DNA from: Macrostomum lignano
Lineage: Eukaryota
Direction: 5' to 3'
Length of the DNA: 64,000 bases
Assembly: GCA_002269645.1 (NCBI GenBank)
Contig: NIVC01001363.1
Span: 1-64,000 of the forward strand
Notes under the pieces: generated by a model
What the model was told of the DNA's origin: nothing
Seen by the model: only the letters and a program-made list of their open reading frames with translations
Database searches by the model: none
Made by a program: the position numbers and the translations under genes
In this document: positions 31,771-56,500 of the stretch, piece by piece
Layout: every line of letters begins with the position of its first letter
Numbering within the stretch: position 1 is the first letter of the stretch

Positions 31771-34045
31771 AGAAGTCATTTATTGTTTTAGGTATTTATT
31801 AATATAAGTCATCCAAGGCTAAATTGTCTCTTTTAATAAAACTATTATTGCTATATTGTAATGACTTCCCAATTCCCATATATTATTAGTTTATAATTAT
31901 AAGCTAGTTTATTTTGAACATTGAATTGGTTCATTCTGCTTAGTCTAACTTTTTTTATTGATTTATTGATCTCTACCCTAACTTTAGCCCTAGTACAGTT
32001 TTTGAAATTATAGAAGCTAATCTCTCTATTTGACTTTAAAAATATATACTTGGTCTATTTATAAATTGGTATTATTTTATTTTATTTGTAAAAATTTGAC
32101 CAAATATAATTAATATAATAGACAATTGAAAATGAAAGTTTAGGCCATTTTGTATATTTAATATTGATTTAAAATGATTATGGAAAACTATAAATTTTAT
32201 ACTATACATTGATTTTTTGATTCCTAAACCTTAAATGAAAAAAGCCATAACAAGCTTGTAAAACATAGTTGTCATAAAACAATAAATAAAAATTACAAAC
32301 TTTTCATTTGACCTATTAGTATTCATTATCTAATGCAAATATGAGGTGGAAGGCCTTTTTGTTTCAATAGATGGAATAGCAGCAAAGATTTTGCGCTGCT
32401 TTGCGTATATATTTATATTACAAATAGCGCGAGATTATTGAGGGACCTAGGGAGGTGCACACATGTGGCGTGGCATGATTGGCTACACAAACCCCCCTGG
32501 CTTAGCAAGCCAGCTAGCGCGGTACACCACCATCCCACCTCAGCTAGAAAGAGGTTGGCGGGGAGGTTTCTAGTGCAGCTACACTGGTGCTGCCAGTTGC
32601 ATAGTCTGGCTGCCACAAATATATCTTATAACAATAAGATAGGGATTATAGGCCTACTTATAGTCAAACATAAAAAAATGCATATATATATAATTTTTGA
32701 GCTTATTTGATAGAAACCAAATGAATTACAATTGCTCCTATCTCTAACATTAGTCAGTGATAACAAATAGGCCTAAACTGATATAAAAATATTATATTAT
32801 ACATGAGTCAATTAAAATATAAAAGAATGACCATTGTTCTAAAACCATTATATTTTTTATATTGCACTGTATATTTATTTTAACCAATATCAATACTTTA
32901 AAAGAACTAAGGGTATAAGTCCAGTTGAAAGGCCAAATATTGACTTAATATCTTAAGCATTTAAATATTGAAACTTGGAATGATCTCACACTTTCATTCA
33001 ATAAAATAGTTTGACTTCAAATTGATGCTTACAAAACAATTCTACAATTTTCCATAGTAAAACAAACATTGACAAATGTATATACATTTAAAAGCATAGG
33101 GCTAATGTGACATGGCCCTAAGGCCAATATCAATATGGTATGGTCTATGATCTAGTCTATGAAAATATGGCAAAGGTGGCTTTGATATGATATTAGGCCT
33201 AGTCTGTGATCTAAACCAAAGCACCTTGGCCCACATAAAATAAAAGTTTTGTAACATGCATGGCATGAGCAACATTCTATTCAATGCATATATAAAGAGT
33301 TTTTGTAGCATCACTTTTTCTACTGGATAAAGATAGATCTAGGCCTAGCCGCCTAGCACACTACTATCCACATTTATTGTTTTTTGACTTTGAATGAAAA
33401 GTACTGAACTCTATTTGGCTATCCTACACTTTCAGTTTAGTTTAGTTTTTAGTTTATAGCTCCTTCTTGGTATATAAACATATGTGCACCCCCCCGATTT
33501 ACACCAGCTGTGCGAGTGTGCGACTTGCTTTTTGACCAAAAATGCAACTTACCTATGAAAGTAATGTCTTCTTTGAGTCCCAAAATCTTCCAAGAAGTGT
33601 ATTAAAAGTTATTAAACCTATTAAATGTTTATTTATGTCTTCTTTTTTATTATTTTTTACGCGAATTATGAACCTCAAAGTGTATTAAACTTTGCAAAAC
33701 ATTTATCATAATTTTTTTAATGTTATATTTGTTTTACCGACTCATTTCACTAATGCGAAGCTTTCGGTCCTCTGTTAACTCGATCTGCTCTTTGAATATT
33801 TTCGTGCTCATGTAAATCCGATTTGGTCATGTGGGCTATGGTTTTGGAGTGTTACATGTATGTATCATGAGCAGATTATGGAGTGTATCATCACGAATTG
33901 TAGGGAGTATCCTGAGCTGATTACACATATATAGGCCGGGTTTATCAGGGGAGGGTGTATCAGGAAGTGAACTGTGGGGATCTCTGTTTCGAAGTCTAAA
34001 TATATGGCTTAATATATAACCGTTAAAAATGTTTCCCACTTTCTT

Positions 34046-34440
34046 CACAGCCCGAAGGTAGCTGCTGGCGAGGAACCGCTTTCCATTGTGAAGTTATCCT
34101 GCAGCTAGAGAATAATCATGGTACCTGGGGCAGTACATGTACCTACGGCAGCAGGCTGAGGCCAACAGCAGAACGAGCTCGAGATCCAATTATAGCAGCA
34201 GCTTGAAACTCGATCAACACATCAGCTCTGCACTCTCAACACCTTAGCTCTGCACTCTCAACACCTCAGCTCTGCACTCTTAACACCTCAGCTCTACGCT
34301 CTCAATACCTCAGCAGCTCTGCACTCTCCGTTGTAATGCATAATTAAAAGTCTCGTATAGAACGCTTAATTTTGTTTCAAGCACTTAACAATTTTGCTTT
34401 AAAATTTCATCAAGTGAAAATCAATGGAAAATAATATATT
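34046..34440 (+). pseudogene. decayed nanos paralog lacking the zinc finger
   Basis: CACAG|CCCGAAGGTAGCT...GAGGAACCGCTTTCCATTGTGAAG aligns with the acceptor and start of nanos exon 2 (43898-43945). A frameshift and TAG follow, then remnants of the Gln repeat, then sequence matching the nanos 3' UTR (GCTCTGCACTCT...TTTGCTTTAAAATT). Confidence 0.8.
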
Positions 34441-34659
34441 CAATAAGCGGGTTCTGCAATTACGAGTAGAGATCGGAGCGAAGAAGGCGGAAAGGAACGG
34501 AGTCTCAATCTCATCCACCTCTCCAGTCTCATCACATCAGTCTCACTTTTTAATGTGACAGAAGGCCCGCCAGACTTACAGACGCGGCGCAAGGACGCAA
34601 CCGGTTCGTGGAGTGAACTCAGATCCTCCCCGAGATTCCCCACCGCAGCTCTCGAGGCC

Positions 34660-34730
34660 TCAGCCAATGGCGGCAGCGCTGCGGCAAAACTCAAAGCGCT
34701 CAGTAGCGAGTTGCGGGGCCATAAATCACA
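34660..34730 (+). promoter_or_regulatory. CCAAT + ATAAA promoter-like module (copy P1)
   Basis: AGCCAATGG (34664) and CCATAAATCAC (34721). The same module recurs at 41311/41367 and, inverted, at about 55270-55340 and 62550-62750. Confidence 0.4.
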
Positions 34731-34884
34731 GGTGGGCAGCCGCTTTGACAAACAGCAGCTCACATCCCGCACGATCTGCAGGTGTGGACTCTTAGCTTTC
34801 TTTTCCTCATTTTTAGCAACTTGTCTACCAGTTCAGTCTCAGTTACAACAGGTTTCAGACATGCAGAGCAGCTTGTCACACAGA

Positions 34885-35480
34885 TTGGCAGAGGGGGTGG
34901 GGGATCAGCAGGGGGTCAGATTAGCAGAGGGTTGCGGATTGGCAGAGGGTGAGAAGGGGTGGATTGGCAGAGGAGGCGGATTGGCAGAGGGGGCGGATTG
35001 GCAGAGGGGGCGGATTGGCAGAGGGGTCGGATTGGCAGAAGGGCAGATTGGCATTAGCAGGGGGGGCGGATTGGCAGAGGGGGCGGATTGGCAGAGGGGG
35101 CGGATTGGCAGAGGGGTCGGATTGGCAGAAGGGCAGATTGGCATTAGCAGGGGGGGGGCGGATTGGCAGAGGGGCGGATTGGCAGAGGAGGCGGATTGGC
35201 AGAGGGGGCGGATTGGCAGAGGGGTCAGATTGGCAGAGGGGGCGGATTGGCAGAGGAGGCGGATTGGCAGAGGGTGAGAAGGGGCGGATTGGCCGAGGGG
35301 GCGGATTGGCAGAGGGGGCGGATTGGCAGAGAGGCGTATTGGCAGAGGGGGCGAATTGGCAGAGGAGGCGGATTGGCAGAGGGGCAGATTATCAAAATCG
35401 GTGGCAGCAAACGAAAGTTCTGCCAATCCGCCCCTCTGCCAATCCGCCCCTTCATCCAATCCACCCCCTCTGCCAATCCG
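34885..35480. repeat. 16-17-bp minisatellite GGATTGGCAGAGGGGC (GC-box fused to inverted CCAAT)
   Basis: The repeating junction reads GGGGCGGATTGG. The last units are inverted. The counterpart array is at 61765-62360. Confidence 0.95.
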
Positions 35481-35859
35481 CCGCTCTCATATTGACCTTA
35501 CCTCTGATGTGAGAAACTGAGAAATGCAGAGGAAAATAAATCATTTCACTGTCAGATCTTCGGGTGTCGCGAAGCAAGTTGAAGCAAGGCTTAGAATTGG
35601 ACAGGACCACCCATGGAGAGGGACAATGGGAATGACAGCTTTTGGCTCCGCTTCTGCATTCTTCCACTCTGACTTCCCTCTCACTCACCTTCAAATGAAA
35701 TAGTAAAGCTCAGACAAGGACTTCTAGAGCTAGCGCCATGCTATTTTGCACCTGAGCTATTTTTAGGAGTCCCCGGCTCAGATCATGGAGTCCCACCTGG
35801 TGTTAACAACGCCGGCGATCTTCACTTAAAAATGTAAAGAAACCGAAAAGCCTATTCTG

Positions 35860-36467
35860 GCTCTCCCTCTACCTCTCCCTCTCCCTCTCTCTTCCTCTCC
35901 TTCTCCCTCTCCCTCTCCCTCTCCTTCTCCCTCTCCATCTCCCTCTTCCTCTCCCTCCCTTCTCTCTCTCCCTCTTCTCCCTCTCCCTCTCCCTCTCCTT
36001 CTCCCTCTCCATCTCCCTCTTCCTCTCCCTCCCTTCTCTCTCTCCCTCTTCTCCCTCTCCCTCTCTCTTCCTCTCCTTTTCCCCCTCCCTCTTCATCTCC
36101 CTCTTCCTCTCCCTCTCCCTCTCCCTCTCCCTCTCTCTCCCTCTTCCTCTCTCTTCCTCTCCCTCTCCCTCTCTTCACCCTCTCCCTCTCTCTTCCTCTC
36201 CTTCTCCCTCTCCCTCTCCCTCTCCTTCTCCCTCTCCATCTCCCTCTTCCTCTCCCTCCCTTCTCTCTCTCCCTCTTCTCCCTCTCCCTCTCTCTTCCTC
36301 TCCTTTTCCCCCTCCCTCTTCATCTCCCTCTTCCTCTCCTTCTCCCTCTCCCTCTCTCTCCCTCTTCCTCTCCTTCTCCCTCACCCCCTCTCTCTCCCTC
36401 TTCCTCTCCCTCTCCCTCTCTTCTTCCTCTCCCTCTCCCTCTCTTCACCCTCTCCCTCTCCCTCCCC
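35860..36467. repeat. CT-rich low-complexity tract (mirror at 61063-61385)
   Basis: Polypyrimidine tract; length differs between the arms. Confidence 0.92.
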
Positions 36468-37334
36468 ATGCAACACAAAACCTCGAACTTTCACTTCTCT
36501 CCCTCAGCTGCCCTCACCCAATTCAAATCTCACTGCTCCTCAGGCCGGCATGGCAACTCCCAGATCGCTCGAGTCTCTCCAGCAGCCGCAGACACCTGGG
36601 CTGGTCGAGAGGCGACCGCGAATTCCCGCTTGGAAACCGCTTGGCAACGGAGAGCCGTCTCCAGCTGCAGCCAGCCTGCGGCCTCTCAACCCCGCTACCC
36701 TCAACCTTTAAGTCCACCTGGAAGTCGAGCCTTCAAACCGGTTCGAAAACCCAGAGCTGGCCTTAGCAACCGCCGCAGACCCACCTACCTGTGGAGTCTC
36801 AACTCGACTGATTCTAAAAATAGCACAGCCGGCAGTGCAGGCGTCCTTGAACCTCACGCAAGGAGCAAGGACCCGAATAACTTTTGGTCTGTCCTTGCGG
36901 ACCCTCAGCCACTGAGGCCCATCCCTCTGTGTAATATCCCAAGCTTTATTTAGCGTTAATTTCAGTCTTAAAACAAGCGCTGCATCTTTTTAATGAATTC
37001 AACAAAATTTAGCAAAGATAATTGCATAGAAAATATTTACTAAGGCTTTGTACAAAGCAGCATATTGAGTTTATTTTATCCTACTTATATTAACTGAATG
37101 TAATTACAAGTGGGCAAAAATTACTGGTTGTTATACTTTTAAAGTCATGCAGCTGAGCAAGAAAGTTGCGGTTATTTGCTTTGAAAATTACAAGCAGACA
37201 ACTATAGAATCGTGTAACTCATGCAAAATTGAAGATGTAAGAAGCGATTCGGAAACAGTTTGGCCTTAAATGTGCAATCGAAATATTTTATGCGATGCGC
37301 CGATGGGAAATCAATTCAGAAGAGAGGCAAAAGC

Positions 37335-37790
37335 AAGGGGTCAAGGGAGTCATTAGGGTCAAGGGGAGTCAGTGGAGTCAAAGGGAGTCAGTGGGGTCAA
37401 GGGGAGTCAGTGGGGTCAAAGGGAGTCAGTGGGGTCAAGGGGAGTCAGTGGGGTCAAGGGAGTCAGTGGGGTCAAGGGGAGTCAGTAGGGTCAAGGGCAT
37501 TCAGTGGGGTCAAGGGAGTCAGTGGGGTCAAGGGGATTCAGTGGGGTCAAGGGGAATCAGTGGGGTCAAGGGGAGTCAGTGGGGTCAAGGGGAGTTAGTG
37601 GGGTCAAGGAGAGTCAGTGGGGTCAAGGGGATTCAGTGGGGTCAAGGGGAATCAGTGGGGTCAAGGGGAGTCAGTGGGGTCAAGGAGAGTCAGTGGGGTC
37701 AAGGGGAGTCAGTGGGGTCAAGGGAGTCAGTGGGGTCAAGGGGATTCAGTGGGGTCAAGGGGAGTTAGTGGGGTCAAGGAGGGTTAGTGG
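37335..37790. repeat. 19-20-bp minisatellite GGGGTCAAGGGGAGTCAGT (mirror at 59785-60192)
   Basis: Tandem periodicity. Confidence 0.94.
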
Positions 37791-37959
37791 AATAAAGGTC
37801 AGCGATGCAATTGAGGATTACAAGTACTTGGTACATTTTTTGTAAACAAAAATGAGCGCATCCGACGTCCTTAGTTCGATTCGCGTGCTATGTAACAGTA
37901 AGGCAACAGTAATAGTAACTCTTTCAACTCAAAATCATAATTTTTTAGAGGCCTTCTCT

Positions 37960-38135
37960 AGGGGTGTCCGGGGTGCCGCTGTCTTGGGTGTCCTGGGGTG
38001 CCGCTGTCTTGGGGTGTCCTGGGGTGCCGCTATCTTGGGTGTCCTGGGGTGCCGCTGTCTTGGGTGTCCTGGGGTGCCGCTGTCTTGGGTGTCCTGGGGT
38101 GCCGCTGTCTTGGGTGTCCTGGGGTGCCGCTGTCT
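37960..38135. repeat. 25-26-bp minisatellite CTGGGGTGCCGCTGTCTTGGGTGTC just 3' of the TIS11-like stop (mirror at 58785-59608)
   Basis: About 7 units on the left arm versus about 32 on the right. Confidence 0.94.
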
Positions 38136-38154
38136 CTTCGGGTGTCTTCCATGT

Positions 38155-40095
38155 TCAGTGCAGAAAGGCGCATCGGCGGCCGAACCTGCAGTGCCCCGAG
38201 CTGAAGGCCAGGCAAGGCACGGTGCGGTACAGTGGGTGTCGAACCACCGACCTCAGCTCGGATTTTCCGTGGGCGAACCGGCACTTCGGACCGTAAGGAC
38301 AGCTGCCGCTCTCCTGCGATGGCGATTTCGGTGGGCCATGAGTATGACCGGGCTGAGGCTATCTATGACCCATGCCTGGCCTATGATGCCCATGACCTAT
38401 AATATCATGACCTATGCCTGGCCTATGATGCCCATGACCTAATATCTATGACCTATACCTGGCCTATGATGCCCATGACCTATAATATCATGACCTATGC
38501 CTGGCCTATGATGCCCATGACCTAATATCTAAGATCTATACCTGGCCTATGATGCCCATGACCTATAATATCATGACCTATGCCTGGCCTATGATGCCCA
38601 TGACCTAATATCTAAGATCTATACCTGGCCTATGATGCCCATGACCTAAAATCTATGACCTATACCTGGCCTATGATGCCCATGACCTATAATATCATGA
38701 CCTATGCCTGGCCTATGATGCCCATGACCTAATATCTATGACCTATACCTGGCCTATGATGCCCATGACCTATAATATCATGACCTATGCCTGGCCTATG
38801 ATGCCCATGACCTAATATCTAAGATCTATACCTGGCCTATGATGCCCATGACCTAATATCTATGACCTATACCTGGCCTATGATGCCCATGACCTATATT
38901 TGGCATTTGATGCCCATGACCTATAATATCGTGACCTATACTACCAATTACTTATAATACTTATGACCTATACTTTCTATGACTACTAGCCTCTCCGACG
39001 ACCAATCTATATGACCATCACTGTATTCCAACCCATTTATATGACCATCAATCCATATGAGCATCAATCTCGATGAGCACCCACTTCTATGACCATAAAT
39101 CTCAATAACCAGAAGCCACTATGACGATCAATATCTATGTCCATCACACCATACGACCACGAATTTTTATGACAATCCTGTGACCATCAGCCTCCATGAC
39201 CATCAATCCATGACTACGAATCGTCATGACCCATCAGTCTGTGGCTCTCAGACCCTATGACCATTAAACCCTATGCTTTACCAATGCATTTCTATAAGCC
39301 AAGATGCAGTCTACTTCGCACTCACAGAGTAGTTCAGGCAGAGTTCTGTTTTGTACTTCTCAGTGTCCAAGTCTCTTCTCCTTGAGCCCTCCTGTTCCTC
39401 CAGCAGCAGGTCGCTGACCAGCCGATCGATGAGGCAGAAAGTGTCTTCGTCCGTGATGACACTGGCTTGCTCTGAAATATGAAATTTGGATGATGATTGT
39501 TTGGGATTATTGGCTGAGTTCTAATGTGTTGGGTATGTTGTAAACATGTGTTGTGACTCCAGACTTGATGTGTGCTGAATGTGTTCTGAATGTGTTCTGA
39601 ATGTGTGCTGAATGTGTACTGAATGTGTACTGAATGTGTGCTGAATGTGTACTGAATGTGTGCTGAATGTGTACTGAATGTGTGCTGAATGTGTACTGAA
39701 TGTGTGCTGAATGTGTACTGAATGTGTGCTGAATGTGTACTGCATGTGTTCTGAATGTGTGCTGAATGTGTGCTGAATGTGTGCTGAATGTGTTCTGAAT
39801 GTGTGCTGAATGTGTACTGAATGTGTACTGAATGTGTGCTGAATGTGTGCTGAATGTGTACTAAATGTGTGCTGAATGTGTGCTGAATGTGTGCTGAATG
39901 TGTGCTGAATGTGTTCTGAATGTGTGCTGAATGTGTTCTGAATGCGTACTGAATCTGTAAAAAATGGGTGCTAAATGTGCAATAAATTCGATGAGCTGTC
40001 AATCAAAAATCCAGGTGCAGCAGAATTTGCTTACCTTCGCTCAGTCGCAGCTCTCCATAGGCGGTCAATCCGGAACTGGAACTGCAGCTGCTCAT
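38155..40095 (-). CDS. TIS11/ZFP36-family tandem CCCH zinc-finger protein, left-arm copy; exons 40095-40035, 39471-39326, 38313-38155; 121 aa
   Basis: The spliced product ends [12 protein letters not shown]|[52 protein letters not shown]. It has the KYKTEL lead-in, CX8CX5CX3H, an 18-aa linker and CX7CX5CX3H. GT-AG sites have matching phases (1, 0). Confidence 0.95.
38350..38950. repeat. about 40-bp ATGACC-rich minisatellite in TIS11-like intron 2 (mirror at about 58070-58560)
   Basis: Unit TATACCTGGCCTATGATGCCCATGACCTAATATCTATGACC, decaying into a degenerate ATGACC tract up to about 39290. Confidence 0.92.
39570..39950. repeat. 10-bp minisatellite CTGAATGTGT in TIS11-like intron 1 (mirror at 56703-57390)
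   Basis: Tandem periodicity; about 38 units versus about 68. Confidence 0.95.
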
Positions 40096-40184
40096 GGCTG
40101 GCTATCAAAATTGCTGAGCTGTGGTGAAAAGTTGAGTAGTGAGTTCGGATGATTTTCAGTTTCAAGCCGCACAGATCCTCAGTC

Positions 40185-40230
40185 CGCTTTTATCGCCTTT
40201 GAAGGGAGGGGACGCCTCCTGAGCCAATGG
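40185..40230 (-). promoter_or_regulatory. putative core promoter of the left TIS11-like gene
   Basis: CCAAT at 40224 and GATAAAA (minus strand, 40194-40188) lie about 95-130 nt upstream of the ATG. Both are conserved in the right arm and in the spacer copy. Confidence 0.4.
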
Positions 40231-40354
40231 GAGAAGCATGGAGAACCTCCGGGCCCCTTGAACCCCTCCCTCACCTTAGCGAATGGGAATCGCCCAGTTT
40301 CGAGCAAGCTTTGGGGTGAATAAAACTTGTAAAGAAACTGGTGGCTGAGTGAAA

Positions 40355-41075
40355 ATCCGCCCCTCTGACACTCCTCAATCCGCCCCTCTGACACTCCTCA
40401 ATCCGCCTCTCTGACACTCCTCAATCCGCCCCTCTGACACTCCTCAATCCGCCCCTCTGACACTCCTCAATCCGCCCCTCTGACACTCCTCAATCCGCCC
40501 CTCCGACACTCCCTAATCCGCCCCTCTGACACTCCTCAATCCGCCACTCTGACACTCCTCAATCCGCCACTCCGACACTCCCCAATCCACCCCTCTGACA
40601 CTCCTCAATCCGCCCCTCTGACACTCCCCAATCCACCCCTCTGACACTCCTCAATCCGCCCCTCTGACACTCCCCAATCCACCCCTCTGACACTCCTCAA
40701 TCCGCCCCTCTGACACTCCTCAATCCGCCCCTCTGACACTCCTCAATCCGCCCCTCTGACACTCCTCAATCCGCCCCTCTGACACTCCTCAATCCGCCCC
40801 TCTGACACTCCCCAATCCGCCCCTCTGACACTCCTCAATCCGCCCCTCTGACACTCCTCAATCCGCCCCTCTGACACTCCTCAATCCGCCCCTCTGACAC
40901 TCCTCAATCCGCCCCTATGACACTCCCCAATCCGCCCCTCTGACACTCCTCAATCCGCCCCTCTGACACTCCTCAATCCGCCCCTATGACACTCCCCAAT
41001 CCGCCCCTCTGACACTCCTCAATCCGCCCCTCTGACACTCCTCAATCCGCCACTCCGACACTCCCCAATCCGCCC
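40355..41075. repeat. 23-bp minisatellite (minus-strand unit GAGGGGCGGATTG(A/G)GGAGTGTCA) between the divergent TIS11-like and nanos genes
   Basis: About 31 units here, about 23 at 55570-56100 and about 8 at 50842-51033. Confidence 0.95.
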
Positions 41076-41614
41076 CAGTTTGCGAATTCGAGTCCGGGAA
41101 AAAAAGGGCGGCTCGGGAAATCCCACCAGACTTTGAGACGCCGTGCAGGGAAGCAGCAGGCAAAGCGTGGGCGGCCAGCATTTCGTGCGGGGGACTCGCA
41201 CTGATCCTCCACAACCGCAACCTCAGCCAGGACTCAACCCCCGCAGATCCCCGCAGACTCCGGCTGCCTGTCTGCGGTCGGCCTCAGCTCCGACCTGCGA
41301 GCTCTCAAAGCCAATGGCGGAGCGCTGCGGCAAAACTCAAAGTGCTCAGTAGCGAGATGCGGGGCCATAAATCACAGGTGGGCAGCACAAACAGCAGCTC
41401 ACACCTCACACCAGCTGCCTGCGTGGAATCAAAGCCCGGGCTTGCAAGCTGTCTGTAGGGTGGTGCATGTACTTTTAAACTCACCGCTTACAGTTGATCA
41501 AACACTAAACTACTAAAGTTTAGTTGAGTTGGTTTTGCTGCACTTTGGTCTTTGTTGGAATTAGAAAACTAACAGCTGTGTGAATTAGCTTTTTGGGTTC
41601 ATGTCATTCAAATT

Positions 41615-41995
41615 GAGGTTCAGGTCATTCAGATTGAGGTTCAGGTCATTGAGATTAAGGCTCAGGTCATTCAGATTGAGTTTCAGGTCATTCAGATTGA
41701 GGCTCAGGTCATTCAGATTGAGGTTCAGGTCATTCAGATTGAGTTTCAGGTCATTCAGATTAAGTTTCAGGTCATTCAGATTGAGGCTCAGGTCATTCAG
41801 ATTGAGGCTCAGGTCATTCAGATTGAGTTTCAGGTCATTCAGATTAAGTTTCAGGTCATTCAGATTGAGGCTCAGGTCATTCAGATTGAGTTTCAGGTCA
41901 TTCAGATTGAGGTTCAGGTCATTCAGATTGAGGTTCAGGTCATTGAGATTGAGGTTCAGGTCATTGAGATTGAGGTTCAGGTCATTCAGATTGTG
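41615..41995. repeat. 21-bp minisatellite TCAGGTCATTCAGATTGAGG(T/C) (mirror at 54290-55050; pieces at 49925-50055 and 50455-50700)
   Basis: Tandem periodicity; source of the spurious LNLNLND and FRSFRLR ORFs. Confidence 0.94.
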
Positions 41996-42364
41996 GCTTA
42001 TAGGTATTGCTCGTAACCGTATTTTACAGAAGAAAATCAATTGGATTTAAACTGCGCAGGACCACCCATTGGGAAAGACAATGGGAATGACAGCTTTTGG
42101 CTCCGCTTCTGAATTCTTCACTCTGACTTCTCTCTCTCTCAGTCTCTCTCTCTTAGTCTCTCTCTCGCAACAACCACCCCACCATGCGCACTGAAGAGGG
42201 GACGCCAAGCGTACACACAAACAAGGGGGTGCAAGGCACACGACTAACCCTAACACCCTCTAATAGAATTGGGGAGGTCAGATCATGGAGTCCCGGTGTT
42301 AACCAAGCCAGCATGCTTTACTTTAAAATGTAAAGAAAATGAAAATCCCTTCTGACTCTCCTCT

Positions 42365-42735
42365 CCCTGGCCCTCTCGCTTTCCCTCTCCTCTCCGCCCC
42401 TCTCCGCCCCTCTCCACCCCTCTCCGCCGCTCTCCGCTCCTCTCCGCCCCTCTCCACCCCTCTCCGCCCCTCTCCGCTCCTCTCCGCCTCTCTCCGCTCC
42501 TCTCCGCCCTTCTCCGCTCCTCTCCGCCCCTCTCCGCTCCTCTCCGCCCCTCTCCGCTCCTCTCCGCCCCTCTCCGCCCTTCTCCGCCCCTCTCCTCTCC
42601 TCTCCGCCCCTCTCCGGCCCTCTCAGGCCCTCTCCGGCCCTCTATGCCTCTCTCCACCTCTCTCCGTCCCTCTCCGCCCCTCGCTGTCCCTCTCCGGCCC
42701 ACTCCGCCTCTCTCCGCCCCTCTCCGCCCCTCACC
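42365..42735. repeat. 11-bp CTCTCCGCCCC-type minisatellite (mirror at 53585-54150)
   Basis: Tandem periodicity; contains repeated CCGCCCC GC-boxes. Confidence 0.92.
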
Positions 42736-43471
42736 GCGCTTTAAACAACTCCAATCTCCTCTCCTCTCTCTCAATCTTCCTTTCGCTCCTCAGGCCGGCA
42801 TTGCAACTCCCAGATCGCTCGAGTCGCTCCAGCAGCCGCAGCCACCTGGGCTGGCCGAGAGGCGACCGCGAATTCCCGCTTGGAAACCGCTTGGCAACGG
42901 AGAGCCGTCTCCAGCTGCAGCCAGCCTGCGGCCTCTCAGCTCCGTCACCCCCTTCCCAATCCGAGTCTCGTTTGGTTGCTGGGGCCATGGGAGTTGGGAG
43001 ACGGCCTGGAGACGCGTCAGTCTGAGATGGCCAGTCGAGTCCACCTGTGTAAAGCTGAGTTCTCGGCATCTCAACATTTCAAGATGGAATTGTATAAATG
43101 TATGCTAAAAATCAGGATTCTTTTTAAGTTTCAAGCTGCATAAATACTGAACTCCTGCTCAAGAAACTCAATTGTCAGTTGTGAAGAAAATATTCAGCTT
43201 TAAAATGAGAGAAAGACTGTGAAAACTGTGAAAACTTTGAACTGGCCTCGACTGTCACTGCCATGCAGTATTCTGTCTCCACCCTCTGTCTCCACCCCCA
43301 GTGAAAGCGCGTCAGCCAATAGCAGGCCGCCTCACACCCACAGGTGAAGATGATTGTCCGCATGGAGTATATTAGAGTGAATAATTTCTCAGATCTCAGG
43401 CAGACTAATTCCAATTCTAGGCTAACTGAAATCCGCAACCTACAGCTTCACCCAGCTTCTCTGCCTCATCA

Positions 43472-44629
43472 ATGCAGCCGTCAAGGAATCGCAGCTTCAT
43501 TGGCCTGAGGTGAGTTCTGAAAGCAGGTTTGAGTACAGGTGTCAGATTTATGCATATAAACTGACAATTAATCGCATCACTTCCTATTTTCTTTGTGTAT
43601 TTTTTGCGTGTGTTGCGTAGTTTTACCACTTTTAAATATAAGCCCGGCCCCTTCTCTATCTCACTTCTCTCCTATCCTATCTCTCTCTCCTATCTCGCTC
43701 TTCCAATTTTACGACCGATTAAAACTGCCACTGTCCGCCTGTTGCTAAATTTAGCTCTCTGTTAGCCCATTCTTTGTTATTTGTCCCACTAGTAATGGGA
43801 CAACAGGGCATGCTTTTGAGACCTACTTAGCTCAGCAGTGTATAACCTCCCTGCCGTCCTGATCAAGCCTAAATATAAAACTTCCCTGCACTCTCATCAC
43901 AGCCCGCGGGTAGCTGGAGAGGAACCGCTTCCCATTGTGAAGCACATTCTGCAGCTGCAGAATCAGTACCTGCAGTACCTGCGGCAGCAGACTGACACCC
44001 AGCAGCAGCTCCAGGTCGAGACCCAGCAGCAGCACGAGCTCGAGACCCAGCAGCAACTCCAGCTCGAGACCCAGCAGCAGCTCAAGCTCGAGACCCAGCA
44101 GCAGCTCCAGCTCGAGACCCAGCAGCAGCTCCAGCTCGAGACCCAGCAGCAGCTCCAGCTCGAGACCCAGCAGCAGCTCCAGCTCGAGACCCAGCAGCAG
44201 CACCATTTCGAGACCCAGCAGCAACTCCAGCTCGAGACCCAGCAGCAGCTCAAGCTCGAGACCCAGCAGCAGCTCCAGCTCGAGACCCAGCAGCAGCTCC
44301 AGCTCGAGACCCAGCAGCAGCTCCAGCTCCAGTTCCAGCCCGCTGCCGCCCCGCTGCCCAACGCCGCCCTGCAGCGCGCGGTGCTCGCCAGGAACGCCAG
44401 CCGGCCGCGCCGCCCCGTCTTCTGCGTCTTCTGCCGCAAGAACGGCGAGCCGGAGGCCTTCAGCAGCGGCCACACCCTGAAGGACGGCAACGGCAGCGTC
44501 GCCTGCCCGGTGCTCAGCCGCTTCACCTGCCCGCTGTGCGGCGCCACCGGCGGCAGCGCCCACACCGTGAAATACTGCCCGCTGGGCACCGGCCACGGCT
44601 GCGGCCGCAGGAAACTGACAGGACAGTGA
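43472..44629 (+). CDS. nanos: Nanos-family (CCHC)2 zinc-finger protein, left-arm copy; exons 43472-43509 and 43903-44629; 254 aa with 14 (LQLETQQQ) repeats
   Basis: [53 protein letters not shown] is the Nanos domain. ATG at 43472 with a phase-2 AG|GTGAGT donor fits the phase of the CATCACAG|C acceptor (765 nt in total). An upstream acceptor at 43445 leaves room for a further 5' exon. Confidence 0.92.
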
Positions 44630-45357
44630 CAGCCCTGCACTCTCAGCACCTCTTAACACCTCACTCTTAACCTGCACTCTTAACACCTCAGCTCTGCATG
44701 CACTCTCAACTGTAATGCAAACCAACTATACGTAAAATTTGCAATGCTTAATTTTGTTTTCTGCAACCAACCTTTGCTTTAAAATTAAAATTAATAAATA
44801 ATAAAGGAAAAATAAATATAATAAGTAAGTCAATAAGAGCAATTATTGTATGTCTGCAATCGGTCAATTTGCCACAAACGCGATTGTATAGTTCGCCTCT
44901 TGTTTTGTCTGAAAGTAATTTTAGGACATGGGTTAATGAGTATACCGGTGTTCATCTTCCTGAGTTCGAATTCCGAAGTTCGAGTTCTTGATGGCAGACA
45001 GACTCATTCGTTAGACTCTAACGTATTGCGCTATTCGAGATATTCGGCTTTCAATTTAATCAAAGAATCTAAAAATAAAGGTACATATGCGCTTCAGAAA
45101 GCAGGAACTTCTATTAATAACCATTTGGGATATACACTCGAATTCTTTCAGTTGAACTGAAAACTGCAGTAGAGAGAAACACAAGAGCATCGGGAATCTG
45201 TGCGGTGATGGGGAATCTCGGGGAGGATCTGTCTGAATCATCGCCACCAACCGCTGATAGAAATCTCTGGCAACCACGAAATATTGAGCCGTAAACGTTT
45301 GCTGGGAATAGAAATATTGAAGCCCATTATAACTTGCTCTATACCAGATACTAGACT

Positions 45358-48947: not shown

Positions 48948-49481
48948 TTGACTTATGTGCATAGTGTATGTATGTATGTTTGTATTTATGTGTATATACG
49001 TCCATATGCTTAAAAATACAGATTTTACAGACTTATTTAATCAAAAGTCTGTACTCATGTTTCTCTATACTCGTGCTTTGAAATCTGTGACAATGAATTC
49101 ACAGATGGGTGGACTTTTTTATAAACCTTTCTGTAAAGTCTCCGTCTCATTCTCCGCTCCTCTCTGATCCCCTTCGCCCGCTCCGCCACTCTCCGCCAAT
49201 CTCCGCCCCTCTCTGCCCCTCTCCGTTCCTCTCCACCCCTCTCCGCCCCTCTCAGCCACTCTCCGCCCCTCTCCGCCCCTCTCCGCCCCTCTCAGCCACT
49301 CTCCGCCCCTCTCCGCTCCTCTCCGCTACTCTCCGCCCCTCTCCGCCCTCCCCGTCCTCTTTGCTTCTCTCCAGAAAAAATCAGAAGGGTGGGGACGGGA
49401 GAGGAGAGTCGGAGAGAGTGACAGGCTGGGAGAGAGTGACAGGCCGGGAGAGAGCGACTTTTTTTATTGTTTTAGACAATT

Positions 49482-49815
49482 AGTTTTTTATTGTCTGTTT
49501 AACAGCAATTATTTATGCTTCCTTGACCTTATTCGCTGAGGAGCGAAGATTTGCGCTCAGCTACGATATGAGCTGGAGACCATACGTACCCTCGTATATC
49601 GTTTGAGTCCAACTCGGTTGATTGCCAAGCGGAATTCTAATTGCGGCTCTGATGCGGCTTTTTCTCACCGCGGTGACCCAGCTGTGAGCTGCAGTCAGCA
49701 AAGCCGACCAGCCGAAGCGGTGAAGTCCGATCTGCAGCAGCTTGAGACACCTGGGATGCTCAGGTTGGCTCAGCTCTCCAAGTGTTCGTAACAGCCCAGT
49801 TCGAGTTGTGCTGAT
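49482..49815. repeat. 334-bp direct repeat, copy 1 (copy 2 at 51854-52187)
   Basis: Apparently identical text at an offset of 2372 (the ORF track shows the same peptides at both sites). Confidence 0.95.
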
Positions 49816-50054
49816 CAAACACTAAACTACTAAAGTTTAGTTGAGTTGGTTTTGCTGCACTTTGGTCTTTGTTGGAATTGGAAAACTAACAGCTGTGTGA
49901 ATTAGCTTTTTGGGTTCATGTCATTCAAATTGAAGTTCAGGTCATTCAGATTGAGGCTCAGGTCATTCAGATTGAGTTTCAGGTCATTCAGATTGAGGCT
50001 CAGGTCATTCAGATTGAGGCTCAGGTCATTCAGATTGAGTTTCAGGTCATTCAG

Positions 50055-51248
50055 AGGGGTGGAGAGGGCCGGAGAGGGGCGGAGAGGGCCGGAGACGGGC
50101 GGAGAGGGGCGGAGAGGGCCGGAGACGGGCGGAGAGGGGCGGAGAGGGCCGGAGAGGGCCGAAGAGGGGCGGAGAGTAGAGAAGAGGGGTGGAGAGGGGC
50201 GGAGAGGGACGGAGAGGGCCGAAGAGGGGCGGAGAGTAGAGAAGAGGGGTGGAGAGGGCCGGAGAGGGCCGGAGAGGGTCGGAGAGGGCCGGAGAGAAGA
50301 GGAGAGGGGCGGAGAGGTAGAGGTTGAGGTAGAAAGGCGAGGGAAAGCGAGAGGGCGAGGGAAAGGAGATGGAGAGGTAGAGTCAGAAGAGATTTTCAGT
50401 TTCTTGATACTTTGAAGTGAGCTGGCTGCTCTCCAAACATCGGGACTCCATGATTTTGAACCTGAATCTGAATAACCTGAACCTCAATCTGAATTACCTG
50501 AATCCCAATCTGAATGACTTAAACCTCAATTTGAATGATCTAACCCTCAATCTGAATGACCTGAACCTCAATCTAAATGACTGAACCCCAATCTGAATGA
50601 CCTGAACCCCAATCTGAATGACCTGAACCTCAATCTGAATGACCTGAGCCTCAATCTGAATGACCTGAGCCTCAATCTCAATGACCTGAACCTCAAGTAT
50701 GACCTGGAGGATCAGTGCGAGTTCCCCGCACGAAATGCTGGCCGCCCACGCTTTGCCTGCTGCTTCCCTGCACGGCATCTCAAAGTCTGGTGGGATTTCC
50801 CGAGCCGCCCTTTTGTTTCCCGGACTCGAATTCGCAAACTGGGGCGGATTGAGGAGTGTCAGAGGGGCGGATTGAGGATTGTCAGAGGGGCGGATTGAGG
50901 ATTGTCAGAGGGGCGGATTGGGGAGTGTCAGGGAGGCGGATTGAGGAGTGTCGGAGAGGCGGATTAAGGAGTGTCAGAGGGGCGGATTGAGGAGTGTCAG
51001 AGGGGCGGATTGAGGAGTGTCAGAGGGGCGGATTTTCACTCAGCCACCAGTTTCTATACAAGATTTATTCACCCCAAAGCTTGCTCGAAACTGGGCGATA
51101 CCCATTCGCTAAGGTGAGGGATTGGTTCAAGGGGCCCGGAGGTTCTCCTTGCTTCCCCCATTGGCTCAGGAGGCGCCCCCTCCCTTCAAAGGCGATAAAA
51201 GCGGCCTGAGGATCTGTGCGGATTGGAACTGAAAATCATCCGAACTCC
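50055..51248. repeat. condensed partial duplicate of the intergenic region, in right-arm orientation, without coding exons
   Basis: Successive blocks match about 53900-54350, 55440-55620 and 56300-56517; it stops about 45 nt before the TIS11-like ATG. Confidence 0.88.
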
Positions 51249-51249
51249 G

Positions 51250-51685
51250 AGAGAGTGACAGGCCGGGAGAGAGTGACAGGCTGGGAGAGAGAGACAGGCC
51301 GGGAGAGAGTGACAGGCGGGGAGAGAGTGACTGGCCGGGAGAGAGTGACAGGTCGGGAGAGAGTGACAGGCTGGGAGAGAGTGACAGGCTGGGAGAGAGT
51401 GACAGGCCGGGAGAGATTGACAGGCGGGGAGAGAGTGACAGGCCAGGAGAGAGTGACAGGCCGGGAGAGAGTGACAGGTCGGGAGAGAGTGACAGGTCGG
51501 GAGAGAGTGACAGGCCGGGAGAGAGTGACAGGCCGGGAGAGAGTGACAGGTCGGGAGAGAGTGACAGGTCGGGAGAGAGTGACAGGCCGGGAGAGAGTGA
51601 CAGGTCGGGAGAGAGTGACAGGTCGGGAGAGATTGACAGGCTGGGAGAGAGTGACAGGCCAGGAGAGAGTGACAGGCCGGGAGAG
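51250..51685. repeat. 20-bp minisatellite GGGAGAGAGTGACAGG(C/T)C-type
   Basis: Tandem periodicity; a short related stretch lies at about 49410-49455. Confidence 0.92.
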
Positions 51686-51853
51686 AGGAAAATCGCGGAG
51701 GCGCGATCAGGAAATGTAAGGTTTTTTGGAAGCAGTTCTTGAGGTGCTTTGTGAAGCTGCTGTGTTAAACGACTTATAGACTTCGGTCGGGGTCAGTCAG
51801 TCAGTCAGTCAGTCAGGCTGGGCCTCAAAGCAGGCTTCACAGCAGGGTTTGTC

Positions 51854-52187: not shown

Positions 52188-52588
52188 TCGCCATGGCAAC
52201 TAGCGGGAATGCAGAGCTCGGGGCCGAGACCAGGTGGGCCCGGCAGCGGAATGAAAGCAACTGGCTGCCCCCTCCGCTCTCCACCTCAATTTCACTTTGA
52301 GTCCGTCTGCCATCAAGAACTGGAACTTTGGAATTCGAACTCAGGACGATCAATATTCTCATCAACTAGAGTTCTAAAGGAACCACATCACAAGCGTGTT
52401 TGACAAATTGATGGATTGCAACTAATTTCATAACTTGCTAATTGATTATATATTATACTCGTAATTTTCTAATTAGTGTTTATTTAATAAAATTTTAAAG
52501 CAAAGATTACGAGTAGTTACAGAACACGAAACTAAGCATTCCATATTTTATGTGGTTAGTTTGTATTACAATTGAGAGTGCAGGGCTG

Positions 52589-53518
52589 TCACTGTCCTGT
52601 CAGTTTCCTGCGGCCGCAGCCGTGGCCGGTGCCCAGCGGGCAGTATTTCACGGTGTGGGCGCTGTCGCCAGTGGCGCCGCACAGCGGGCAGGTGAAGCGG
52701 CTGAGCACGGGGCAGACGACGCTGCCGTTGCCGTCCTTCAGGGTGTGGCCGCTGCTGAAGGCCTCCGGCTCGCCGTTCTTGCGGCAGAAGACGCAGAAGA
52801 CGGGGCGGCGCGGCCGGCTGGCGTTCCTGGCGAGCACCGCGCGCTGCAGGGCGGCGCGGCCGGCTGGCGTTCCTGGCGAGCACCGCGCGCTGCAGGCCGG
52901 CGTTGGGCAGCGGGGCGGCAGCGGGCTGGAACTGGAGCTGGTGCTGCTGCTGGGTCTCGAGCTGGAGCTGCTGCTGGGTCTCGAGCTGGTGCTGCTGCTG
53001 GGTCTCGAGCTGGAGCTGCTGCTGGGTCTCGAGCTGGTGCTGCTGCTGGGTCTCGAGCTGGAGCTGCTGCTGGGTCTCGAGCTGGAGCTGCTGCTGGGTC
53101 TCGAGCTGGAGCTGCTGCTGGGTCTCGAGCTGGTGCTGCTGCTGGGTCTCGAGCTGGAGCTGCTGCTGGGTCTCGAGCTGGTGCTGCTGCTGGGTCTCGA
53201 GCTGGAGCTGCTGCTGGGTTTCGAGCTGGAACTGCTGCTGGGTCTTGAGCTGGTGCTGCTGCTGGGTCTCGAGCTGGAGCTGCTGCTGGGTCTCGAGCTG
53301 GTGCTGCTGCTGGGTCTCGAGCTGGAGCTGCTGCTGGGTCTCGAGCTGGAGCTGCTGCTGGGTCTCGAGCTGGAGCGGCTGCTGGGTGTCAGTCTGCTGC
53401 CGCAGGTACTACAGGTACTGATTTTGCAGCTGCAGGAGTTCAGTGTTCGCGGTCGCCTCTCGGCCAGCCCAGGTGGCTGCGGCTGCTGGAGCGACTCGAG
53501 CGATCTGGGAGTTGCCAT
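52589..53518 (-). CDS. nanos: rearranged nanos copy: intronless 309-aa ORF with a Ser-rich N-terminus and an intact Nanos zinc finger (function uncertain, possibly a pseudogene)
   Basis: ATG at 53518, then about 19 (SSSSSSRP) units, then CVFCRKNGE...[28 protein letters not shown]. The ancestral Gln frame has a TAG (53412-53410) and a 46-bp duplication (52805-52896). Confidence 0.65.
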
Positions 53519-56500
53519 GCCGGCCTGAGGAGCGAAAGGGAGATTGAGAGAGAGGAGAGGAGATTGGAGTTGTTTAAAGCGCGGTGAGGGGCGGAGAGGG
53601 GCGGAGAGAGGCGGAGTGGGCCGGAGAGGGACAGCGAGGGGCGGAGAGGGACGGAGAGAGGTGGAGAGGGGCGGAGAGGGGCGGAGAGGGGTGGAGAGAG
53701 GCGGAGAGGAGAGGAGAGGGGCGGAGAGGGGCGGAGAGGGCCGGAGAGGGGCGGAGAGGGGCGGAGAGAGGCGGGGAGGGCCGGAGAGGGGCGGAGAGGG
53801 GTGGAGAGAGGCGGAGACGGCCGGAGAGGGGTGGAGAGGGGCGGAGAGGGCCGGAGAGGGGTGGAGAGTAAAGGAGAGGGGCGGAGAAGGGGCGGAGACG
53901 GGCGGAGAGGGGCGGGGAGGGACGGAGAGAGGCGGAGAGGGGCGGAGAGGGCCGGAGAGGGCCGAAGAGGGGCGGAGAGTAGAGGAGAGGGGCGGAGAGG
54001 GGCGGAGAGGGACGGAGAGGGGCGGAGAGAGGCGGAGAGGGGTGGAGAGGGCCGGATAGGGCCGGAGAGGGCCGGAGAGGGCCGGAGAGGGCCGGAGAGG
54101 GCCGGAGAGAAGAGGAGAGAAGAGGAGAGAAGAGGAGAGGGGCGGAGAGGTAGAGGTTGAGTTAGAAAGGCGAGGGAAAGCGAGAGGGCGAGGGAAAGGA
54201 GATGGAGAGGTAGAGTCAGAAGAGATTTTCAGTTTCTTGATATTTTGAAGTGAGCTGGCTGCTCTCCAAACATCGGGACTCCATGATTTTGAACCTGAAT
54301 CTGAATGACCAGAAACTCAATCTGAATGACCTGAACCTCAATCTGAATGACCTGAACCTCAATCTGAATGACCTGAACCTCAAGTTGAATGACCTGAACC
54401 TCAATCTGAATGACCTGAACCTCAATCTGAATGACCTGAAACTCAATCTGAATGACTTGAGCCTCAATCTGAATGACCTGAAACTCAATCTGAATGACAT
54501 GAAACTCAATCTGAATGACCTGAGCCTCAATCTCAATGACCTGAGCCTCAATCTAAATGACCTGAACCTCAATCTCAATGACCTGAAACTCAATCTGAAT
54601 GACCTGAGCCTCAATCTGAATGACCTGAGCCTCAATCTGAATGACCTGAACCTCAATCTGAATGACCTGAAACTCAATCTGAATGACCTGAGCCTCAATC
54701 TGAATGACCTGAACCTCAATCTCAATGACCTGAACCTCAATCTGAATGACCTGAAACTCAATCTGAATAACCTGAGCCTCAATCTGAATGACCTGAACCT
54801 CAATCTGAATGACCTGAAACTCAATCTGAATGACCTGAACCTCAATCTGAATGACTTGAACCTCAAGTTGAATGACCTGAACCTCAATCTGAATGACCTG
54901 AACCTCAATCTGAATGACCTGAGCCTCAATCTGAATGACCTGAACCTCAATCTGAATGACCTGAGCCTCAATCTGAATGACCTGAACCTCAATCTGAATG
55001 ACCTGAGCCTCAATCTGAATGACCTGAACTTCAATCTGAATGACCTGAACCCAAAAAGCTAATTCACACAGCTGTTAGTTTTCCAATTCCAACAAAGACC
55101 AAAGTGCAGCAAAACCAACTCAACTAAACTTTAGTAGTTTAGTGTTTGATCAACTGTAAGCGGTGAGTTTAAAAGTACATGCACCACCCTACAGACAGCT
55201 TGCAAGCCCGGGCTTTGATTCTACACAGGCAGCTGGTGTGAGGTGTGAGCTGCTGTTTGTGCTGCCCACCTGTGATTTATGGCCCCGCATCTCGCTACAG
55301 AGCACTTTGAGTTTTGCCGCAGCGCTCCGCCATTGGCTTTGAGAGCTCGCAGGTCGGAGCTGAGGCCGACCGCAGACAGGCAGCCGGAGTCTGTGGGGAT
55401 CTGCGGTGGGGAGTCCTGGCTGGGGTTGCGGTGGGGAGGATCAGTGCGAGTCCCCCGCACGAAATGCTGGCCGCCCACGCTTTGCCTGCTGTTTCCCTAC
55501 ACGGCGTCTCAAAGTCTGGTGGGATTTCCCGAGCCGCCCTTTTGGTTCCCGGACTCGAATTCGGAAACTGGGGCGGATTGGGGAGTGTCAGAGGGGCGGA
55601 TTGAGGAGTGTCAGAGGGGCGGATTGAGGAGTGTCAGAGTGGCGGATTGAGGAGTGTCAGAGGGGCGGATTGAGGAGTGTCAGAGGGGCGGATTGGGGAG
55701 TGTCAGAGTGGCGGATTGAGGAGTGTCAGAGGGGCGGATTGGGGAGTGTCAGAGGGGCGGATTGGGGAGTGTCAGAGGGGCGGATTGGGGAGTGTCAGAG
55801 GGGCGGATTGAGGAGTGTCAGAGTGGCGGATTGAGGAGTGTCAGAGGGGCGGATTGGGGAGTGTCAGAGTGGCGGATTGGGGAGTGTCGGAGGGGCGGAT
55901 TGGGGAGTGTCAGAGGGGCGGATTGGGGAGTGTCGGAGGGGCGGATTGGGGAGTGTCGGAGGGGCGGATTGAGGAGTGTCAGAGTGGCGGATTGAGGAGT
56001 GTCAGAGGGGCGGATTGGGGAGTGTCGGAGGGGCGGATTGAGGAGTGTCAGAGGGGCGGATTGAGGAGTGTCAGAGGGGCGGATTGAGGAGTGTCAGAGT
56101 GACATGAAGTGTGTCAGAGTGAATTCCCCAAATCCATTTGAGGAAATAGTTTCATAGCTTCGTTTTCATTTGATTCATGGTGTCATCGTGTCATTTCCTT
56201 AATTTTGCTTTCTGCTGCTTTTTCGCAATGCTTTGCCTTACCTTATGAGAGGGGGTCATCAGAACGGGATGTCTCTTATCTCCAGAAAGTTAAGCATTGA
56301 TTTTCACTCAGCCACCAGTTTCTATACAAGATTTATTCACCCCAAAGCTTGCTCGAAACTGGGCGATTCCCATTCGCTAAGGTGAGGGATTGGTTCAAGG
56401 GGCCCGGAGGTTCTCCTTGCTTCCCCCATTGGCTCAGGAGGCGTCCCCTCCCTTCAAAGGCGATAAAAGCGGCCTGAGGATCTGTGCGGCTTGAAACTGA

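Follow-up and report, generated by a model that had tools for sequence, protein, structure and literature searches.

The right-arm copy of nanos in a palindromic locus of Macrostomum lignano is probably a young non-processed (duplicated) pseudogene, and the uninterrupted frame of 309 amino acids that runs through it into an intact Nanos zinc finger would be a by-product of its lesions rather than a repair. The window analysed is a stretch of 64,000 nucleotides (positions 1 to 64,000 of contig NIVC01001363.1, assembly GCA_002269645.1), to which all positions below refer. We infer that the copy is non-functional from the loss of its 5' regulatory and coding parts, together with the absence of any statistical excess of openness in the frame. 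The lesions, a frame geometry that does not depend on the order in which they arose, and the polarity of an ATG/ATT difference at the start of the frame are read directly from the sequence. A sequence-only reading of the same DNA had proposed that a compensated frameshift rescued this copy as a new Nanos with a swapped low-complexity domain. The geometry of that proposal stands; the step from there to a rescue and a new Nanos found no support in any test, and one premise, about the start codon, proved to be reversed.

The two copies lie on the inverted arms of a ~10.4-kb palindrome, separated by a unique spacer of about 7.3 kb. Substitutions between the arms amount to 2.5-5%, with 15% in the innermost 300 bp, and the arms differ further in satellite copy numbers and by structural changes. 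Tandem repeats occupy 58% of the window, in a genome where simple or tandem repeats make up 15% and duplicated blocks 180 Mb (PMC5730564). The arms, the left copy and a third relic of the gene are placed as follows.

34030-34480, plus strand: third, older nanos relic, in which the acceptor, the beginning of exon 2 (PKVAAGEEPLSIVK), about two degenerate repeat units and motifs of the 3'UTR survive
34647-45006, plus strand: left arm of the palindrome, from arm comparison
62635-52298, minus strand: right arm of the palindrome, from arm comparison
43473-44629, plus strand: left-arm nanos, predicted two-exon model of 254 aa, apparently intact
43473-43510, plus strand: predicted exon 1 of left nanos
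43511-43902, plus strand: predicted intron of left nanos
43903-44629, plus strand: predicted exon 2 of left nanos
43997-44329, plus strand: left 24-bp repeat, 13.9 units
44417-44587, plus strand: left nanos finger, 96.5% identical in protein to the right finger

The left gene model is deduced from a GTGAGT donor, a cag acceptor and frame continuity: the ATG stands at 43473, the donor (AG/GTGAGT) follows 43510, the acceptor (cag/) precedes 43903, the two exons join without a change of frame and the stop comes at 44629, with a CCAAT at 43316 and a TATATTA at 43368 upstream. Gene pairs on palindrome arms are familiar, for example from the ampliconic genes of sex chromosomes. The nanos paralogues are like them in being inverted, on arms that have diverged by a few percent around a unique spacer. 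Unlike ampliconic palindromes, the nanos arms are short, satellite-rich and structurally divergent, with no clear arm-to-arm homogenisation.

The right copy is colinear with the left one over an upstream module, the repeat, the finger and the 3'UTR, sharing the flanks of its parent as non-processed pseudogenes do. It also bears what marks such pseudogenes, namely disabling lesions or the loss of promoter and first exon: a deletion, a stop codon at 53411 and a 46-bp (+1) duplication. Its parts are these.

53446-53583, minus strand: right copy of the upstream module, with TTTAAA (53578-53573), CCAAT (53567-53563), a pyrimidine tract plus AG (53526-53525) and an ATG (53518-53516)
53432-53445, minus strand: deletion junctions, where a 13-nt island (ACTGAACTCCTGC) is kept between deletions of 273 and 794 bp
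52935-53387, minus strand: right 24-bp coding minisatellite, of 18.9 units in which CTC and CAC variants alternate
52631-52801, minus strand: right Nanos zinc finger, C-X2-C-X12-H-X10-C and C-X2-C-X7-H-X4-C, with all eight ligands
52589-53518, minus strand: 309-aa ORF, made of a 43-codon N-terminus (module and junction), the Ser-rich 24-bp array, a linker and the Nanos zinc finger
52479-52484, minus strand: retained AATAAA poly(A) signal, about 105 nt past the stop codon

The gap of about 1.07 kb that had been noticed against the left copy comprises left positions 42873-43145 and 43159-43952, which makes 1,067 bp; the island at 53444-53432 corresponds to left 43146-43158, and a CTGC microhomology lies at the second junction. 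With this segment went the CCAAT at 43316, the TATATTA at 43368, the exon-1 ATG at 43473, the donor (43510/GTGAGT), the whole intron with its acceptor, and 50 nt at the beginning of exon 2. In the ancestral, Gln-coding frame the reported nonsense change is also present: TAG at 53411-53409 (minus strand) in the right copy vs CAG in the left. The same change is silent in the Ser-coding frame (TGC>TGT) and creates a GT dinucleotide. Another change specific to the right copy, AGA>AAA, replaces R by K in the Ser frame and is silent in the Gln frame. These right-specific changes outside the finger (TGC>TGT, AGA>AAA) show no pattern.

The tandem duplication of 46 bp was recovered by TRF at 52803-52902 (minus strand; 2.2 copies, 98% matches), and since 46 is 3x15+1 it shifts the frame by +1. 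In the left copy the unit occurs once, flanked by direct repeats GCCGCCC at 44363 and 44409, that is, 46 bp apart, an arrangement that fits an origin by replication slippage between them. The 24-bp repeat counts 18.9 units on the right vs 13.9 on the left, and a 62-bp repeat block of the 3'UTR, present in the left copy and in the older relic, is absent from the right copy.

The resemblance to non-processed pseudogenes is thus a matter of several traits at once: an origin by local duplication, the loss of the 5' region and of the initiator exon, a nonsense change together with a frameshift in the parental frame, and an age too young for further decay. After the duplication of the locus, a two-part deletion associated with microhomology took away the promoter-like region together with exon 1, the intron and 50 nt at the start of exon 2. 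The right copy also gained the CAG>TAG change and the 46-bp slippage duplication between the GCCGCCC repeats, and its coding minisatellite grew from about 14 to about 19 units.

What sets this copy apart is its open frame. As the sequence-only reading had claimed, an uninterrupted ATG-initiated ORF of 309 aa does exist at 52589-53518 (minus strand), and the 24-bp repeat, QQQLQLET in the ancestral frame, reads SSSSSSRP in the frame of the ORF, the product of which is 40% Ser. Three-frame translation of the right copy gives an Ala-rich peptide, AAAPARDP, in the third sense frame. The compensation was correctly described too: the deletion junction sets the ATG of the module in the Ser frame and the 46-bp duplication brings back the frame of the finger, so that a segment in a new frame is bounded by two events and the downstream frame is restored, as in a compensated frameshift. 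The Ser frame is the only one of the right copy that runs from an ATG into the intact Nanos finger. No parental N-terminal sequence is translated in it, exon 1 and 50 nt of exon 2 being deleted and the rest being read in another frame. The ORF is accordingly devoid of the inherited N-terminal effector region, putative in the parent, that serves Nanos proteins for recruitment of the deadenylase complex.

In most non-processed pseudogenes an ATG-initiated frame no longer reaches an intact domain, and the right copy is uncommon in this respect, owing to a coding minisatellite free of stops and an ancestral ATG upstream. Chance would suffice for the geometry: the deletion may simply have set this ancestral ATG into the AGC (Ser) frame, and, the CAG-rich repeat being stop-free in every sense frame, the +1 shift of the duplication would happen to lead the Ser frame into the finger.

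CAG-rich repeats yield polyGln, polySer and polyAla from their three frames, as is seen in repeat-associated non-AUG translation. The 24-bp repeat behaves alike in giving Gln-, Ser- and Ala-rich peptides. The difference is that non-AUG translation draws on one mRNA, and here the Ser frame would be reached through an ordinary AUG after a genomic rearrangement. Protein segments derived from frameshifts were reportedly the subject of earlier work, by Raes & Van de Peer in 2005 and by Okamura et al. in 2006. The right copy resembles frameshift-derived tandem-repeat segments (Osmanli et al., 2025, PMC12871928), where translation of a repeat changes frame, the repeat remains open, the downstream frame is recovered through a second event and a new low-complexity segment results. 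Those cases come from expressed or conserved genes; the right copy, by contrast, is known from its sequence, and the event that changed its frame is the very deletion that removed the promoter.

The start codon belongs to a low-copy 5' module, found five times in the window: the right copy listed above and the following four.

42785-42950, plus strand: left module copy, in which 42800-42802 read ATT
36535-36700, plus strand: module copy c3
60993-60840, minus strand: module copy c4
46225-46116, minus strand: module copy c5, degenerate, with non-triplet gaps

The contrast between ATGGCAACT at 53518 on the right and ATTGCAACT at 42800 on the left is real. Its direction is the opposite of what had been supposed. 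Four of the module copies still have this stretch and could be aligned over it; three of them (right, c3 and c4) have the ATG, and so does a left-type, undeleted copy in another, older M. lignano assembly (public model P0006, which reads ...IPAWKPLGNGEPSPAAASLRPLSSVTP); for this reason the ATT is the derived state, in the left copy, and the ATG, far from being an enabling gain of the right copy, is ancestral there. Likewise, the deletion is derived in the right copy, since the module copies c3, c4 and left extend beyond its breakpoint. The module was also considered as a conserved coding exon and rejected as such: from the ATG, the ORFs of c3 and c4 reach only 53 and 67 aa, their tails differ, and c5 has its non-triplet gaps.

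Is the frame more open than it should be? Its length and openness are no greater than chance would give, for the repeat is poor in stops, an antisense frame is open as well, shuffled sequence often stays open and long ATG-initiated ORFs abound nearby. Five of the six reading frames of the 24-bp unit, namely all three sense and two antisense ones, contain no stop. Across the 930 nt of the ORF one antisense frame has no stop at all, which gives an ORF of 318 aa, and upstream of the ATG another 266 codons in the frame of the ORF, running through a (CCTCTCCGCC)n satellite, are free of stops as well. The part of the ORF that lies outside the repeat and is not read in the parental frame comes to only about 215 nt, and dinucleotide-preserving shuffles of these segments remained open in 24% of trials. 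Were an indel to shift the frame somewhere from the TAG to the finger, one possible shift in two would enter the Ser frame. The window holds 74 ORFs of at least 120 aa and 11 ATG-initiated ORFs of at least 300 aa; each of these 11 is 59-95% tandem repeat, and the 309-aa ORF is the shortest. By the shuffles, the antisense frame and the ORF count of the window, the new-frame ORF is neither longer nor more open than composition predicts.

The last 70 residues of the ORF are a bona fide Nanos zinc finger, with E values of about 1e-19 to the solved fingers of Drosophila (5KL1) and zebrafish (3ALR) Nanos; its ligands stand in FCVFC...H...C and CPLC...H...C. Pfam PF05741 (zf-nanos, cut-off 27 bits) matches ORF residues 242-294 with 86.2 bits (E=1.8e-24), over profile positions 1-53 of 54, and the left finger scores 83.1 bits. 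Like the family (PF05741; 5KL1, 3ALR), the ORF has a C-terminal double CCHC finger with canonical spacing. Unlike the parent, it has an unrelated N-terminal part that comes from another frame and from the upstream module.

GDSAH on the right vs GGSAH on the left was confirmed, the codons being GAC at 52665 and GGC at 44553, and a second difference was found, V on the right (GTC at 52716) vs A on the left (GCC at 44502). That GDSAH is the consensus also holds, since 125 of 175 homologue domains have D at this position and just three have G. The V recurs in P0004, a divergent nanos-type model of M. lignano that does not map to the window. As D is the family majority and P0004 has V, both amino-acid differences appear to be derived in the left copy. 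The ancestral V and D would show only that the right finger is not yet decayed, as expected at about 1% divergence per lineage. In 231 nt the two fingers differ at four sites (1.7%; ~98% identity), two of them synonymous (CCG/CCC, ACC/ACT) and two non-synonymous (A/V, G/D); the resulting pN/pS of 0.33 (Fisher p=0.26) has, with four sites, no power to detect constraint. Against the arm baseline of 2.5-5%, the 1.7% of the finger is not a significant difference. Nor is the similarity of the fingers significant evidence of selection or gene conversion, with about four differences seen and about eight expected from a baseline of 2.9%.

Some features of the right copy would permit expression. The ATG at 53518 is the first in about 750 nt of the upstream minus strand, in the context GCCGGCATGG, with G at -3 and +4. 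TTTAAA and CCAAT lie 45-60 nt upstream of it, and 6 nt before it an AG closes a long pyrimidine tract. In M. lignano, 30-39% of genes are SL trans-spliced, with a 35-nt SL that ends in ATG (PMC5730564, PMC8629364), so that the loss of promoter and start codon is less decisive than it would be elsewhere; long polycistronic or operon-like precursor transcripts are common in this species as well (PMC5730564). An SL spliced at 53526-53525 would be in frame (ATG/GCC GGC ATG). The AG at this place was nevertheless rejected as a specific trans-splice site: the acceptor motif of the species, YTNCAG (PMC8629364), recurs in every repeat unit.

One may then ask whether the right copy is translated from the ATG at 53518 into a 309-aa neo-paralogue, in which a disordered N-terminal region rich in Ser, Arg and Pro would precede a normal Nanos finger. 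This is unlikely. Transcription would have to start at a cryptic promoter (the TTTAAA at 53578 together with GC-box-like CCGCCCC motifs of a 10-bp satellite), or else a longer precursor would be SL trans-spliced. Without the ancestral N-terminus, the Ser-rich protein might still bind RNA or Pumilio but would lack the usual effector region. In favour of this reading, the two frame changes compensate exactly, the intact finger keeps its ancestral V and D, no other AUG precedes the start codon within about 750 nt and positions -3 and +4 are both G, an in-frame SL is possible at 53526-53525, the poly(A) signal is kept and CAG>TAG leaves the protein of the Ser frame unaltered; frameshifted tandem repeats are, besides, a recognised source of new protein segments (PMC12871928). 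Yet composition fully explains the openness of the ORF, its ATG is ancestral and no enabling gain, the promoter-like region and exon 1 are deleted, the AG site is unspecific (YTNCAG being found throughout the repeat), AGA>AAA alters a residue of the Ser-frame protein, and the resources reached hold no record of such a protein or transcript. That the product would be a germline Nanos with a new Ser/Arg/Pro-rich region, born from a slippage-compensated minisatellite frameshift and expressed through a cryptic promoter or an SL, we regard as rather unlikely too. Were the frame translated, it would be a very recent, dated, stepwise and mechanistically transparent birth of a low-complexity domain fused to a conserved RNA-binding finger.

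The retention of the eight ligands and of the family-majority residues, the ATG context, the pyrimidine tract with its AG, the AATAAA and SL trans-splicing count against the pseudogene reading.

Public records were explored in several ways. Exact-sequence look-ups of the 309-aa product and an 80-aa C-terminal piece, of the antisense 318-aa product, of a left ORF of 263 aa and of the spliced left product returned no record, and control ORFs from the M. lignano genome, among them a SNAPC1 exon, were likewise without a match. A word-indexed search with the C-terminal 100-116 aa matched none of the proteins that an exhaustive representative search does retrieve, namely Nanos proteins of M. lignano and of other organisms. 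No description of nanos in M. lignano was found in a literature search.

Among the models retrieved, UniProt A0A1I8F3U0 (M. lignano) is 99% identical over the finger, and its exons map to the right-copy locus on the minus strand. One exon ends exactly before the TAG, using the GT that the mutation created, and the model resumes at the AG before RPRRPVFC; the model also has an "intron" that crosses the real stop codon, and satellite ORFs are chained after it. P0006 includes an antisense translation of the finger, and P0007 follows the Ser frame over part of the left copy. These UniProt models of the locus are stop-avoiding predictions, not transcripts.

These models bring forward another candidate product, a cis-spliced Nanos without the repeat, with the donor CCT/GTAGTA (GT at 53412-53411, from CAG>TAG) and the acceptor AG at 52819-52818 before RPRRPVFC. 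Such a GT-AG intron of 595 nt would drop the stop, the repeat and the duplication while keeping the frame, and public model P0001, which maps to the right-copy locus, does read NQYL/RPRRPVFC. This product is nonetheless highly improbable: its donor, GTAGT, deviates from the species consensus GT[G/A]AG (PMC8629364), its frame contains no ATG from the stop at 53576 down to the donor, and the public model that supports it skips the real stop and chains satellite ORFs, as its sister P0006 has an antisense finger.

The deletion junction and the V and D alleles are found as well in a public model from an earlier assembly (ML2). This bears on the idea that long-read mis-assembly produced the palindrome, the deletion or the 46-bp duplication; such an error would not be out of place in a region that is 58% tandem repeat. 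Palindromic artefacts are known for PacBio data. Here such an artefact was set aside because the arms are diverged and a spacer separates them: with 2.5-5% divergence, different satellite numbers and structure, and 7.3 kb of unique sequence in between, these are not copies that differ at the level of errors. The ML2 model shows the same deletion junction, the same V and D and the same exon end at the TAG, with the reservation that the reads behind the two assemblies may not be independent. A clean 46-bp duplication between direct repeats is, in addition, typical of biological slippage. Mis-assembly is therefore very unlikely.

If the right copy is a pseudogene, as we prefer, it is a worked example of how stop-free minisatellites and GC-rich satellites yield long, domain-containing ORFs. 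Such ORFs mislead gene predictors, as witnessed by the UniProt models that chain satellite ORFs and cross stop codons. This is of use for annotating the highly repetitive, partly polyploid genome of M. lignano and for nanos RNAi, reporters and knock-outs. Targeting of nanos calls for caution, with at least two near-identical fingers and a relic at the locus, and with the further nanos-type model P0004 outside the window.

A role at the RNA level can also be envisaged. Lying on one arm of an inverted repeat, the right copy might, through convergent or read-through transcription, give a non-coding RNA, complementary to the left nanos mRNA over about 650 nt of coding sequence and repeat, and thereby feed small-RNA or antisense regulation of nanos. 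Hairpin-RNA and pseudogene-siRNA loci are known from other animals, and the regulatory idea is derived from them. The inverted orientation, the 7.3-kb spacer and the 98% identity of the fingers would suit it, as would the long precursor transcripts common in M. lignano (PMC5730564). Against it, no sequence feature requires such a role, and an Rfam search returned zero matches at the gathering threshold. We hold it to be quite unlikely.

Finally, the older relic at 34030-34480 places the pseudogene interpretation of the right copy in the context of the locus. Its finger is deleted and it contains in-frame stops; having lost the finger, it indicates that the locus has a history of nanos duplication and loss. 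The expansion of the 24-bp array appears confined to the lineage of the left and right copies.

The left and right nanos copies lie on opposite arms of a large palindrome, with a further remnant of the gene beside it:

34647-45006 (+) and 62635-52298 (-): arms of an inverted duplication of ~10.4 kb, separated by a 7.3-kb spacer
34030-34480 (+): third and older nanos relic, adjoining the left arm just outside the palindrome

Both arms carry the same order of minisatellites, with periods of 11, 23, 21 and 10 bp and differing copy numbers, and the series is present a third time, in part, within the spacer (49151-51687). What the relic retains is a splice acceptor, the beginning of exon 2 (PKVAAGEEPLSIVK), some two degenerate copies of the 24-bp coding unit and the repeat motifs of the 3'UTR. 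Its zinc finger has been deleted, and in-frame stops are present.

The left nanos, apparently an intact gene copy, appears to hold the derived state at both amino-acid differences of the finger, V>A and D>G (44501-44553, +). At the second position, aspartate is found in 125 of the 175 homologue domains and glycine in only three of them. The same A/G pair recurs in two other protein models of M. lignano, P0006 and P0007. In the right copy, the CAG>TAG change in the ancestral glutamine frame gives rise to a GT dinucleotide at 53412-53411 (-). A public model of the locus, A0A1I8F3U0, takes this GT as a donor and the AG at 52819-52818 (-) as the end of a 595-nt GT-AG "intron" that keeps the frame, excising the stop, the repeat and the 46-bp duplication. 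Public models of the nanos locus also chain together satellite ORFs and antisense finger sequence.

Two further kinds of sequence have copies upstream of the gene:

42785-42950, 53583-53446, 36535-36700, 60993-60840 and 46225-46116: five copies of a low-copy module of ~165 bp
42389-42737 (+) and 53581-54215 (-): satellite of 10-bp units, (CCTCTCCGCC)n, immediately 5' of left and right nanos, respectively

Every intact copy of the module has a pyrimidine tract followed by AG, with an ATG 6 nt further on; only the left nanos copy has ATT in its place. In the further copies c3, c4 and c5, a CCAAT box lies ~50 nt upstream. The module may be a piece of a mobile element, a promoter or a fragment of a 5' exon. 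Dozens of GC-box-like CCGCCCC motifs are scattered through the satellite upstream of both nanos copies. The satellite lacks any ATG in the direction of the gene, and across it the frame of the right ORF stays open up to a stop at 54319.

Just past the left stop codon stands another repeat:

44647-44708 (+): 62-bp block of 13-bp repeats (CTCTTAACACCTCA)

The left copy has this block and the relic an expanded form of it; the right copy (compared at 52582, -) lacks it. Past it, the left and right 3' flanks share only ~70-85% identity, a divergence far above that of the coding part.

Tandem repeats make up 58% of the whole window. Positions 1-10504 form one tandem-repeat block (~10.5 kb) of constant composition (GC 0.41, AT skew -0.53). 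An ORF at 30856-31338 (-), with a significant match to the SNAPC1 domain (snRNA-activating complex subunit 1; PF09808, E=6.7e-15), probably represents one exon of a genuine gene adjoining the repeat-rich block.
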